Part shown: positions 29,704 through 34,032 of the stretch, in pieces | How positions within the stretch are numbered: position 1 is the first letter of the stretch | Layout: each line of letters opens with the position of its first letter | Assembly: GCA_025201805.1 (NCBI GenBank) | Contig: MU619258.1 | Span: forward strand, 143,455 to 207,454 | Source: Parasitella parasitica NRRL 2501 | Lineage: Eukaryota > Fungi > Mucoromycota | DNA: 64,000 nucleotides | Reading direction: 5' to 3' | Made by a program: the position numbers and the translations under genes | The notes under the pieces: generated by a model | The model's input: the letters and a program-made list of their open reading frames with translations, nothing else | Database searches by the model: none | Told to the model about the DNA's origin: nothing

Positions 29704-30963
29704 CCTCTTCTTTTTCTATCTCTTTTTATTCAAAAACGCTTGAGTTTGTTCCAAAGAATTAAACAACTGGAGGTAAGAAAGATATGAGCTTCTATGAATT
29801 GTTACATTTAAAAGTTTTTTCGAAATTCAACGTCCCAAAGCGACTATGATTTTTTTGACAAGATCAACTACCATGCCAACCAATGGTTACAACCAAGATA
29901 ACAGACAAGACCGACATATATGATTCATATCTGTTAGTTAAAGCCCCAAACTAGCCATTCGCAATTAGATTCTGTATTCTCTTAGGATCTGTAAATTTGA
30001 ACGGGTTGAAGGGCCCAGCTCCAGGATGATGTGGGGATACCAATTTGAAAGTGTTGCTTAACAATCGTTGCTAAGAAAATCACAGCTTGAGTTTTGAGAA
30101 ATGTCAAGTAGAAAAGGCTCAGAAACTTGAAATAATAAGCAAATAATCAATCCGAAGGAAAAATGAGAGTTACTTTGCAAACTTTCAACGATGGAAAGCT
30201 TGTTTATTTGGCTGGAATTTTAAATGGAAAGTAGCCGTTTGATCTCGTTACGCCTTATGGGATTAGCCTGGTTTGAAGGTCTTGGTTTAGCATATGGACA
30301 CATATAAAGCTAATCACACGGACACTTTTCTAATAACTTCAAAATTGTGGTTGGCGAGCAAGTCGTAAATTTGGTCAATACGGTATATGCGACAACCAAG
30401 ATTATCAGAATATGGGATTTATTGAAAATTGTTTATTGAACGGTAAAAAATAAGGTTAAATTTTTTTTCATAGTATAATACGGTTGAAAAATTTGACGCA
30501 TGCTAGGGTCTTTCAATTAAACTTCCAAAATAGCCTTCCAACCCTTGAGTTGTTGTAAGCTGGATAATAAGCATTTAAGGCTATCGTGTAAAGAAGAGTG
30601 CACAAAATGATTGTCTTTTTAACGACGTAAACCCTATTAAACTTTACCACTCGAACCTAAATTGAAATCAAAATTTCAACTAACAGATTTACATCACTTC
30701 CTTTGAACCCATAAAAGAGAGGGAAATAGGGTACAAATTGCGGTACAACATCCGTGAGAGGAACATCTCAGCCGTAGGAACCGCTGAGGCCATCTGATGT
30801 TATAAAGCAAATGAAATTAAGACCGGTATCTGTTCAAGTGGTGCAGTGCACAATGAAAGTGACTAGGTTCCAATTTATCAAACGCTTTGGTGGGCTCAGA
30901 TACGAAGTAGAAATACAATGTCAAAAATTTCTATATTCCCTTCTCTTGTCCACAATTTGGAGC

Positions 30964-33900
30964 ATGACTCACAAGTTGCTTTCATCACCATCAATTCCTA
31001 CAATTGTCAAAAATAAGCGACATCGACCCAATGAAAAACCACTCGATGAAGAAGACATCAATGTTATTGTAAATATTCTAGGAAATCAGTTGTTGAATGT
31101 AAAGAAATTAATCATGGTTGAAAAAGGTATTATATAATAGGAATTTTTGTCGAGTCTTTTTTTCATTGATGCATTATGCCGAATATACACATTAGATACT
31201 TATACACCCTCTGCGGCTGTCACCTTTTTACTCCGTAGAATGGATGTCGACACACAGAATGCTCAATCACTCGAGATCTATTGTTTAATGACAGCATTTA
31301 TGACAGTGTATCTCTGCTTCATCAGGCTGCTGATCCACCAGCAAGAGTTTGACCACTTTATGCAGCTGTTCAACGACCATGACTCGCTACTAAATCAAGA
31401 TAATCAGCCATTTTTGTGGTTTTATGCAGTGCACCACATGTCAGTAGAGGATGATCTGCATAAACAATTGATGACAACCGGCAGAAATGCGCACTCACAC
31501 CCCCATCTGATCCTCGCAAACATAGACTCTATTTTTTCCAAATTTTATACGCATTACTTTCTCGAAATGTCAGCGGCTAAACACCAAAAGGATCACGGTC
31601 AGTTTTACACACCTCAATCTGTGTTGCGCTTCATGTGGGATAAATGCGCTGATGTAGCCCACCTCATTACACGGCTGCAACAAAAGAGCATGTGCAGTGT
31701 ATTTGATCCCTGCCTCGGCATCGGCTCTTTTCTATGCGAATTCTTGACACGACTCATCAAGGCCTGCCAGTTATCATTATGGAATGATCCACAACGACTA
31801 GCTCACCTCCTTCTATACGACATTCCAAATCATATCTACGGCATTGAAATCGATCCTTTTGCTTACCAGCTCTGCAAAATGAATATGATGGTACATCTGT
31901 ATCCACTATATCGACGCATTAACGAGCTTAAAGTGCAACTACCACCGAAATCTATCCATCGCTTGAAACTTTTCTGTAATGATACGCTCAAACTGGCAGT
32001 TAAATCAAACCCTTTTTGGAATACAGAATCAACAGACCCCTTTGAGAAACACTGGCTAGATCAATTGCGCGATGCCTCCAAATTGAAGTTTGATTTTATT
32101 GTGACGAATCCACCCTACATGATAAGAAAAACAGGCTTCATCACTCAACCAGACTCTGCTATTTATGATGAATCAAAGCTAGGTGGCGCAAAGATATCTC
32201 AGGCTTACTTGTATTTCATGTGGATTACTCTCCAAAGATGCGACGATTCCAACGGTCAAGTATGTCTCATTACACCTAGCCAATGGATGGTGTTGGAATT
32301 TGCAGAGCAATTAAGGTACATTGCATACACTTAGTCTGACATGCTGTTAATGCTACTGACGTTATACAATAAGAAACTGGATTTGGGACAATTGTAAATT
32401 ATTAGACATCTATGAATTTGAACCCTATAAAGTGTGGCCCAAGGTACAAACAGATTCGCTCATTTTTCGCATATGCAAACGCTCAAGCACGTTGCCCAAC
32501 TCAAATCACACTCTATACCTTCGCCATGTGGGCAAAAATACTAACTTAAGGCAGCTATTAGAAATTTACCAGGAGTTTAGACCTGACCAGCCGATTGCAG
32601 ACCATTCACTCAAGTATAAACTTACAGCACTCACACAAGAAAACAGAGTGCTCCAAACAAACCATTCGTCTTTCTCGTTTCTTTTACCGTCAGTCTCCTT
32701 TTTGGACCAGCTCAATAGCATAACTCAGCACCTGGCTCGTATTTGTGATAGTGATCCCTCCAGATCAAACACGGCGCCTCTCGTTTGGAACCGAGGTCCG
32801 AACACAAATCCAGTGTACTCGTTAGTGGTGCGCACAAGCTGGGCAGTAGAAACATTTGGGCAAGAAACCTGTGATCGATGGCTGAAGCCCTGCTTTTACT
32901 GGAACGGAAAAACCATCTCAGCTGCTACAGGAGGTGGGAAAGAAGGCACGTTTTGGAAAGACAGAGATCCTTTTCGATTGAGCAAAAAAGAAACATCAGC
33001 AGCAGAAGCATACCTACCATACTACAATGCAGATGTCCCATTTTACTCTATGATCATGGTTAATAAGGAAGACGCAGAAAAGCTCAAGGAAGACTACGCC
33101 AACAACGGTGTATGGGCTGCCCTGTACTCTTATCTTCAAGATGCTCGTATTGCGCTTCAAGCTGATAAAAAGGAGGAGGACATAGCAAATTGCCAATACA
33201 ACAAGTGTGGATTAGTGCCTGTAAAAATCGTACACCCTATCAATTGCGGCTACTTTACTCGATCACAACCACGGCCTCGTTTCTTTGTCGACAGGCACAA
33301 AATGGCAGTAACAAACCAATGTATATACTTCACTGTGAAACCAGATTATCCGTGGCAAGATCCAGACTTTTTCTGTGGTTTGTTGAACAGCACATTGCTA
33401 ATGTTTTTCATCAAGTTGCATTGCAGCTATGACCAGCAAGGCCGCATGCGTTTTTTTGGCAGATTGATGGCCTACATTCCGTTTGCGCCACCTCTGTCTT
33501 TTGAATACATGCAGTGGGTATCTGGATTTGTTCAGGCTGCGACTATTGTGAGATCGTACTTGTATAAAACGATACGCTATTCGAAAGGAAGCCAGAAATT
33601 AATAGAAAGAGTGCGCAACTTTGAGTGGCATATAACACAAGCAGAGCTGGGGATTCTGGGTCGATTTGAGCCACCATTGGATTGGAAAGATTCGTTACCG
33701 AATGTAACGCAACATGGATGGATTATTGAACTTTTTAAAAAAGTTAACACTCATGAAAATATTCAAGATGCGTTTAATATTATGTTGAGGCTTAACTCCT
33801 TGTTTCAATTTGCTATTGACCAAATGATTTATCATATGTATCGAATCCCTGAAAACCTTCAGCTAGAAATAGAGCATGACTTGAAACTAGATAATTTACG

Positions 33901-34009
33901 CCAAGAATGGTTGACTTTCAATACACCAACCCTAGACGACTCGACTCAGCCTGAAGAATGGCACGAATCTATACTATCTATCGCTCAATCTTTTGTTAAT
34001 AAACCATGA
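30964..34009 (+). CDS. Bacterial RM-type (gamma-class, Eco57I/TaqI/Type IIG-like) amino-DNA methyltransferase, ~972 aa, 3 exons
   Basis: Exons 30964..31126, 31196..32315 and 32374..34009 splice in frame via GT-AG introns. Motifs KDHGQFYTP, VFDPCLGIGSFL, IYGIEID, FDFIVTNPPY, CLITPSQW..LR, RFFVD..TNQCIYF..GLLNS, IDQMIYHMYRI. The start could instead be the in-frame ATG at 30811. Confidence 0.88.
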
Positions 34010-34032
34010 GTAGAGTGGAGCAAGTTGTAATA

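Follow-up and report, generated by a model that had tools for sequence, protein, structure and literature searches.

MetB, a PF02384 protein conserved in early-diverging fungi, was described in 2024 (Lax et al., Nat Commun 15:6066; PMC11258239). Deletion of metB in Mucor lusitanicus removed 70-75% of N6-methyladenine (6mA), chiefly its asymmetric fraction, and abolished the AAA(6mA)CA motif, and the knockout was viable with mild phenotypes; symmetric ApT methylation depends instead on the MT-A70 Mta1 complex (PMC11258239). In the same study a fungal-only "clade 1" was ascribed to an ancient bacterial transfer, identities to bacterial proteins being often <30%, and HHpred returned an MmeI-like target recognition domain (TRD), with MmeI named as homologue (PMC11258239). 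MetB has been cited in the same terms by a 2025 Nature Genetics paper (PMC12695648) and a 2026 review (PMC13297926). Here we analysed a stretch of 64,000 nucleotides (nt) of Parasitella parasitica NRRL 2501 (contig MU619258.1, positions 143,455 to 207,454; hereafter the window) and in particular a methyltransferase gene on its forward strand at 30964-34009. This gene is very probably the P. parasitica orthologue of MetB, a bacterial-derived gamma-class N6-adenine DNA methyltransferase that writes asymmetric 6mA. An earlier note on this DNA, made from the letters alone, could not tell whether the gene had been described before. It has, as MetB (PMC11258239), so that the finding is already known, and the exact window protein is already in GenBank.

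The best sequence-profile and structural match to the fungal protein is CamA, an orphan adenine methyltransferase of Clostridioides difficile (Protein Data Bank (PDB) 7LNI, 7RFK), which likewise shows the gamma motif order and carries a catalytic domain and a C-terminal TRD in one chain with no nuclease. CamA falls within the gamma group and is active as a monomer, with a catalytic domain at residues 1-320 and a TRD at 320-577, and the base that it methylates is the final A of its asymmetric site, CAAAAA (PMC8187626). Its target, an adenine ending an asymmetric A-tract, is reminiscent of the AAA(6mA)CA of Mucor MetB. However, the two proteins share only 12-14% identity and the fungal one is longer by ~400 amino acids (aa), with an N-terminal helical region, insertions in the TRD and a helical tail at the C-terminus; no evidence points to direct descent. 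M.BseCI and M.TaqI, which are gamma-class Type II methyltransferases with TaqI_C-type specificity domains, each pair with a restriction enzyme, and the M.TaqI site is the palindrome TCGA. M.TaqI is a much weaker match to the fungal protein than M.BseCI (PDB 7QW5-8). The same methyltransferase and TRD module is found in MmeI (Type IIL, PDB 5HR4) and in PglX/BrxX of the bacteriophage exclusion (BREX) systems, which rank slightly below CamA and M.BseCI, but the N-terminal nuclease domain, the BREX partner genes and the extra C-terminal PglX domains of these systems are absent here. BREX PglX has ~1200 aa and lies in a brx/pgl operon, whereas the window protein has 972 aa and lies among eukaryotic genes, and its NCBIfam PglX matches reach 28-30 bits against cut-offs of 400-500. 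In Type IIG/IIL enzymes (Eco57I, MmeI, BpuSI) a nuclease is fused N-terminally; in contrast, no nuclease Pfam domain was found on exon 1, exon 2 or the deposited full-length protein of the window gene.

The gene runs from an ATG at 30964 to a TGA stop at 34007-34009 and consists of three exons separated by two GT..AG introns. Exon 1 (30964..31126) holds 54 codons and the first base of codon 55 and encodes an N-terminal leader starting MT, with a conserved KRxRP basic patch, possibly a nuclear localisation signal. Intron 1 (31127..31195; 69 nt, phase 1) splits a GAT (D) codon. Exon 2 (31196..32315) encodes the N-terminal helical region and then most of the Rossmann-fold catalytic domain including motifs V and VI, and intron 2 (32316..32373; 58 nt, phase 2) splits an AGA (R) codon within the methyltransferase domain. 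Exon 3 (32374..34009) begins with the beta-strands that end the catalytic domain (motifs VII-VIII; 32374..32629, about CamA residues 233-320), continues into a TRD of the CamA / M.BseCI / MmeI / PglX type (32630..33847, exon-3 residues ~86-491, boundaries approximate) and closes with a C-terminal helical tail and the stop (33848..34009; helices 493-542 in the exon-3 model). Together the three exons give a coding sequence of 2919 nt, that is 972 codons and the stop. The N-terminus of the protein is kept in Mucor species and the C-terminal tail among Mucorales orthologues, the tail yielding no informative structural match in the model comparison; the TRD has fungus-specific conserved insertions.

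This spliced three-exon model is the annotation already deposited. A P. parasitica protein of 972 aa (P0228), named "S-adenosyl-L-methionine-dependent methyltransferase", is 100% identical to the products of exon 1 (residues 1-54), exon 2 (56-427) and exon 3 (429-972), and its residues D55 and R428 agree with the split-codon prediction. In our searches the exons were used separately, not joined, and full-length checks were made through this protein and natural orthologues. The two introns and the frame of ~972 aa proposed in the earlier note are thus borne out, to the exact coordinates, by the sequence, the spliced RNA contigs and the deposited protein. An in-frame ATG also occurs at 30811 and would add 51 codons upstream (30811-30963). 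The start at 30964 is preferred because RNA depth is ~2 over 30811-30963 against 13-23 within exon 1, and because the orthologues begin at the MT of 30964.

RNA support is from a single public run (X1), the only one covering the locus, which is stored as contigs from which no expression level, transcript ends or strand can be read. Its contigs are 100% identical to the window and skip both introns exactly (69 nt and 58 nt, GT..AG ends). A contig of 113 nt skips intron 1, and another of 2768 nt joins 31194..32311 to 32370..34019 and so skips intron 2; a contig abutting adapter starts at ~30962, beside the ATG. Since the contigs are spliced, they derive from complementary DNA despite a guessed RNA label. 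The earlier note had staked its reading on the gene being neither silent nor unspliced, and the gene is expressed and correctly spliced. A short RNA contig of low depth (window 31068-31223) joins 31068 to 31127 through an alternative 58-nt GT..AG intron and retains intron 1. This isoform would hit a stop at 31193-31195 and is probably a minor unproductive form or noise.

By motif order, Pfam and fold, the window protein is a gamma-class amino-methyltransferase, the class to which it had been assigned from its letters. Motif X (31588-31614), the S-adenosyl-L-methionine (SAM)-binding motif I of the FxGxG type (31699-31734) and the catalytic NPPY of motif IV (32107-32118) all lie in exon 2 and are followed by the TRD from ~32630, which is the order of gamma-class N6-adenine DNA methyltransferases. 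Each motif listed in the earlier note was found at or within ~10 nt of the position given there, the later blocks lying in exon 3, and in the alignment the catalytic motifs are conserved across the family rows covering the region. Exon 2 matched the Pfam models N6_Mtase (3.5e-22) and Eco57I (1e-20), and the deposited full-length protein matched N6_Mtase (PF02384) at 3.8e-21. PF02384 is above the gathering score for both, and the Eco57I domain crosses the exon 2/3 junction in the deposited protein (residues 266-449). A match of exon 2 to MmeI_Mtase was marginally sub-threshold. The sole Pfam match of exon 3 was TaqI_C at 0.01, also sub-threshold, so that two of the three profiles suggested in advance (N6_Mtase and Eco57I) proved strong and the third weak. 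NCBIfam and PADLOC gave weak generic matches to HsdM, Type II, Type IIG, MADS and PglX methylases. No MT-A70 domain (PF05063, DPPW) was detected in the window gene by Pfam.

A search with exon 3 returned 56 proteins, and all the named ones belong to Mucorales, Umbelopsis, Mortierellomycota, Glomeromycota, Basidiobolus or Paraphysoderma. The Paraphysoderma match, KAI9143530.1, and KXN73575.1, a member of a Conidiobolus cluster, are the two accessions named as metB in the text of PMC11258239, and about a dozen more of our matches are listed in its Supplementary Data 4 (e.g. KAI8988547.1, PHZ10716.1, ORY94032.1, OAD69548.1 and ORX96779.1). P. parasitica CBS 412.66 was among the 183 proteomes surveyed there (PMC11258239). 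The M. lusitanicus protein KAL0140656.1 is colinear with the window protein, with 65%, 70% and 67% identity to exons 1, 2 and 3, and both exon junctions fall at matching residues. The likeness to MetB of M. lusitanicus (Joint Genome Institute (JGI) ID 1597305) thus comprises colinearity, 65-70% identity, the two intron sites, the downstream synteny with TPT and BEACH genes, the set of Pfam domains and the sister placement by phylogeny. On the other hand, M. lusitanicus is of a different genus, and KAL0140656.1, the model compared and the presumed equivalent of JGI ID 1597305, is without motif I owing to frame problems in that assembly. Relative to the window, the M. lusitanicus assembly GCA_040256725.1 has three single-base insertions or deletions in the equivalent of exon 2 (L002:10209-11317) and a further frame change in that of exon 3 (L002:11372-13020). 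KAL0140656.1 (903 aa) skips short stretches at the three exon-2 sites, and motif I and the CNDTL block are lost. Either the assembly or the annotation is in error, or the reference MetB gene is present there as a broken copy specific to the strain.

With exon 2 as query, an exhaustive HMMER search gave 37 matches below 1e-30, all those named being fungal, and the next matches fell to 1e-19..1e-14 at ~26-36% identity. The named ones past this drop are an IMG "type I RM methylase", a methylase from a Nanoarchaeota metagenome-assembled genome and a Gefionella transcript. A quick IQ-TREE phylogeny (84 rows, 285 columns) joined the window protein and its M. lusitanicus counterpart as sisters within Mucorales (Shimodaira-Hasegawa approximate likelihood ratio test (SH-aLRT) 98). 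Every named early-diverging fungus falls in a clade of 37 rows (SH-aLRT 99) in which no row is named as something else, and a long branch parts this clade from 47 prokaryote-like rows, whose proteins have ~24-36% identity. The Gefionella protein (P0110), a 1142-aa N6_Mtase protein from the EukProt transcriptome of the malawimonad Gefionella okellyi, groups with the prokaryote-like rows and represents either contamination or a separate eukaryotic acquisition.

The gene is flanked upstream by a DEAH helicase and a Cid1-type poly(A) polymerase and downstream by a TPT transporter and a BEACH/WD40 protein, in line with the ordinary fungal flanks of the earlier note, and its guanine-cytosine (GC) content is similar to that of the surroundings. 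The order metB - TPT - BEACH is common to M. lusitanicus and the window, and in Rhizopus, too, a Cid1-type polymerase lies close by; the check by phylogeny and synteny returned both a Mucor sister and a gene order shared with Mucor. Intron 2 occupies an identical site, in the same phase and Arg codon, in five further genera of Mucoromycotina, represented by M. lusitanicus, Cokeromyces recurvatus, Rhizopus microsporus, Phycomyces blakesleeanus and Calcarisporiella thermophila, and the site of intron 1 is common to M. lusitanicus and R. microsporus. In Conidiobolus coronatus there is no intron at the intron 2 site (L006:7870-7915). The gene span of that homologue exceeds its coding length by ~60 nt, and its only intron apparently lies elsewhere. 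These comparisons are evidence that intron 2 is older than the split of Mucorales from Calcarisporiella. Conserved introns, microsynteny and the tree together demonstrate, at the level of sequence comparison, vertical inheritance within fungi. The proposal of an old bacterial acquisition that later gained introns is supported by the clade restricted to early-diverging fungi, the long branch and the age of the introns.

In the 32.8-Mb assembly the window gene is the only N6_Mtase locus. Three MT-A70 loci lie elsewhere in the genome (C2:236536-237039, C70:141224-141598 and C47:144343-144762), one of them with a TGA within the match that is probably an intron; presumably they are the Mta1, Mta9 and MetC-type genes. 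Therefore, both classes of 6mA writer are present in one genome.

Confident AlphaFold2 models were obtained for the full-length Cokeromyces orthologue (predicted local distance difference test (pLDDT) 84, predicted template modelling score (pTM) 0.80) and for the product of window exon 3 (pLDDT 83, pTM 0.84). With the Cokeromyces model, Foldseek placed CamA first (8.7e-21; most of CamA covered, template modelling (TM) score 0.66-0.72 of target), followed by M.BseCI and then by PglX/BrxX, BpuSI, DrdV and MmeI. The exon-3 model gave a similar ranking with CamA and M.BseCI at the top, and DNA methyltransferases thus lead the structural comparison that the earlier note had proposed. VIA-align Z scores of the exon-3 model were 16.6 for CamA (333 residues aligned, CamA 233-577), 15-16 for M.BseCI, 14.6 for MmeI (model residues 1-503), 13-14 for BrxX/PglX and ~5.8 for M.TaqI. 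An MmeI-like C-terminal TRD is accordingly recognised by structure and not by Pfam hmmscan. Single-sequence searches of the PDB gave weak HsdM matches only for exon 2 and none for exon 3, and therefore family profiles were needed. These matched CamA (3e-14) and M.BseCI, and the exon-3 family profile found the M.BseCI TRD at 5e-5 as its sole PDB sequence match. As modelled, the TRD module is the one called MmeI-like in PMC11258239, and its closest solved relatives are the monomeric, nuclease-free CamA and M.BseCI.

Taken together with the genetics of MetB, these features suggest how the window protein may work. It joins a SAM-binding Rossmann domain and its own TRD in one chain of 972 aa, and it is therefore expected to be active as a monomer that needs neither a specificity subunit nor a nuclease. 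On binding to a short site that is not palindromic, it would flip the adenine to be modified into its NPPY pocket, and N6 would be methylated on a single strand. The product would be the "asymmetric" 6mA fraction, AAA(6mA)CA in M. lusitanicus, separate from the symmetric ApT methylation of the MT-A70 complex, whose genes are also in the genome. For Parasitella, we deduce the 6mA activity, its strandedness and its approximate motif from the knockout in Mucor and the structures of CamA and M.BseCI. The gene had been suggested to encode a second sequence-specific writer of 6mA or N4-methylcytosine (4mC), possibly for defence; the 6mA part has been shown genetically for M. lusitanicus MetB, whereas nothing found supports the 4mC alternative or a defence role.

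Several points weigh against the assignment of the window gene as a MetB that writes asymmetric 6mA. The activity and the motif are transferred from an orthologue at ~70% identity, and differences in the TRD relative to Mucor could alter the recognition site. We found no in vitro assay of MetB in the literature, direct catalysis resting on genetics. On both exon 3 and the deposited protein the Pfam TRD models are below threshold, with TaqI_C at 0.01 and MmeI_TRD not reported. Finally, the RNA label of X1 is a guess, and X1 is a single run.

The first of these points leads to a reading in which the gene is the same MetB-family 6mA methyltransferase, but its site in Parasitella differs from the AAAACA of Mucor through divergence of the TRD. 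Exon 3, which encodes the TRD, shares only 67% identity with its M. lusitanicus counterpart, and in enzymes of the MmeI type and Type I the specificity can be shifted by a few substitutions in the TRD. The most conserved TRD blocks, however, are near-invariant across Mucorales, and we consider a changed site unlikely. More speculatively, MetB may descend from, and work like, a solitary CamA/BseCI-type monomer reading an asymmetric A-tract, and not from a nuclease-fused Type IIL or BREX enzyme. In Parasitella, a fusion mycoparasite, the strand-asymmetric mark could then separate parasite nuclei and DNA from host DNA. This extension of the MetB assignment is offered as a long shot.

The gene might instead supply the methylase of an active restriction or defence system, Type IIG/IIL or BREX-like, by which unmethylated foreign DNA would be cut or excluded. 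The resemblance of its domains to MmeI, BpuSI, DrdV and PglX and the weak PglX and Type IIG profile matches on exon 2 point that way. However, there is no nuclease domain, and the region upstream of the catalytic domain (the first ~140 residues in the Cokeromyces model) is short, all-helical and without a Pfam match. Exon 3 matches no PADLOC model, the flanking genes are eukaryotic housekeeping genes and none is a BREX partner, and the Mucor knockout is viable with mild phenotypes, so a defence methylase is very improbable here.

NPPY motifs also occur in protein and RNA methyltransferases such as HemK/N6AMT1, Trm11 and RlmKL, and a placement with HemK/N6AMT1 or Trm11 was the outcome that the earlier note had named as fatal to its reading. 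Around the NPPY of the window gene there are indeed short sub-threshold matches to MTS, UPF0020, PrmC and HemK models, but they reach 12-20 bits over ~30 residues against curated cut-offs of 22-199 (PrmC/HemK 17-20 bits against 115-199, MTS 13 bits against 23), with no full-length match among them, whereas N6_Mtase and Eco57I score 75-90 bits. The top structural matches are all DNA methyltransferases solved with DNA, and it is DNA 6mA that is lost in the Mucor knockout; a protein or RNA substrate is therefore extremely improbable. Bacterial or endosymbiont contamination, or a decaying pseudogene, has only the otherwise prokaryotic domain family in its favour and next to no probability, being refuted by the spliced transcripts, from which two spliceosomal introns are removed, and by synteny with Mucor, alongside eukaryotic flanks, a GC content like the surroundings, an open frame with all catalytic motifs intact, and nearest listed non-fungal proteins that are ~24-36% identical.

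Further variation was observed among the fungal homologues. A second protein labelled P. parasitica (P0230, 969 aa) is 81-87% identical to the window protein, while the window genome is single-copy, and the divergence between the two "P. parasitica" assemblies at the metB locus seems surprisingly high. Gongronella butleri has several MetB paralogues (P0085, P0086 and P0088), two of them on one 933-kb contig, and the near-consecutive accessions KAI8071769 and 71-74 in the list of PMC11258239 suggest a tandem expansion in Gongronella. The homologues of Mortierellomycota (P0093-P0098, P0103, P0252-P0259) have 1300-1760 aa and match in three separate stretches, and therefore contain large insertions or additional domains that the Mucorales proteins do not show.

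The MetB story, with its knockouts, methylomes and phylogeny, was published in 2024, and the window adds to it chiefly by confirmation, in the form of independent transcript support for the Parasitella gene model. It also adds evidence for an origin of intron 2 before Mucorales and Calcarisporiella separated, a modest extension of the published phylogeny, and it suggests CamA and M.BseCI as slightly better structural templates than MmeI for modelling the specificity of MetB. The window gene thus very likely represents a prokaryotic restriction-modification-type methyltransferase that early-diverging fungi have domesticated to serve, beside the MT-A70 complex, as a second 6mA writer with motif specificity.

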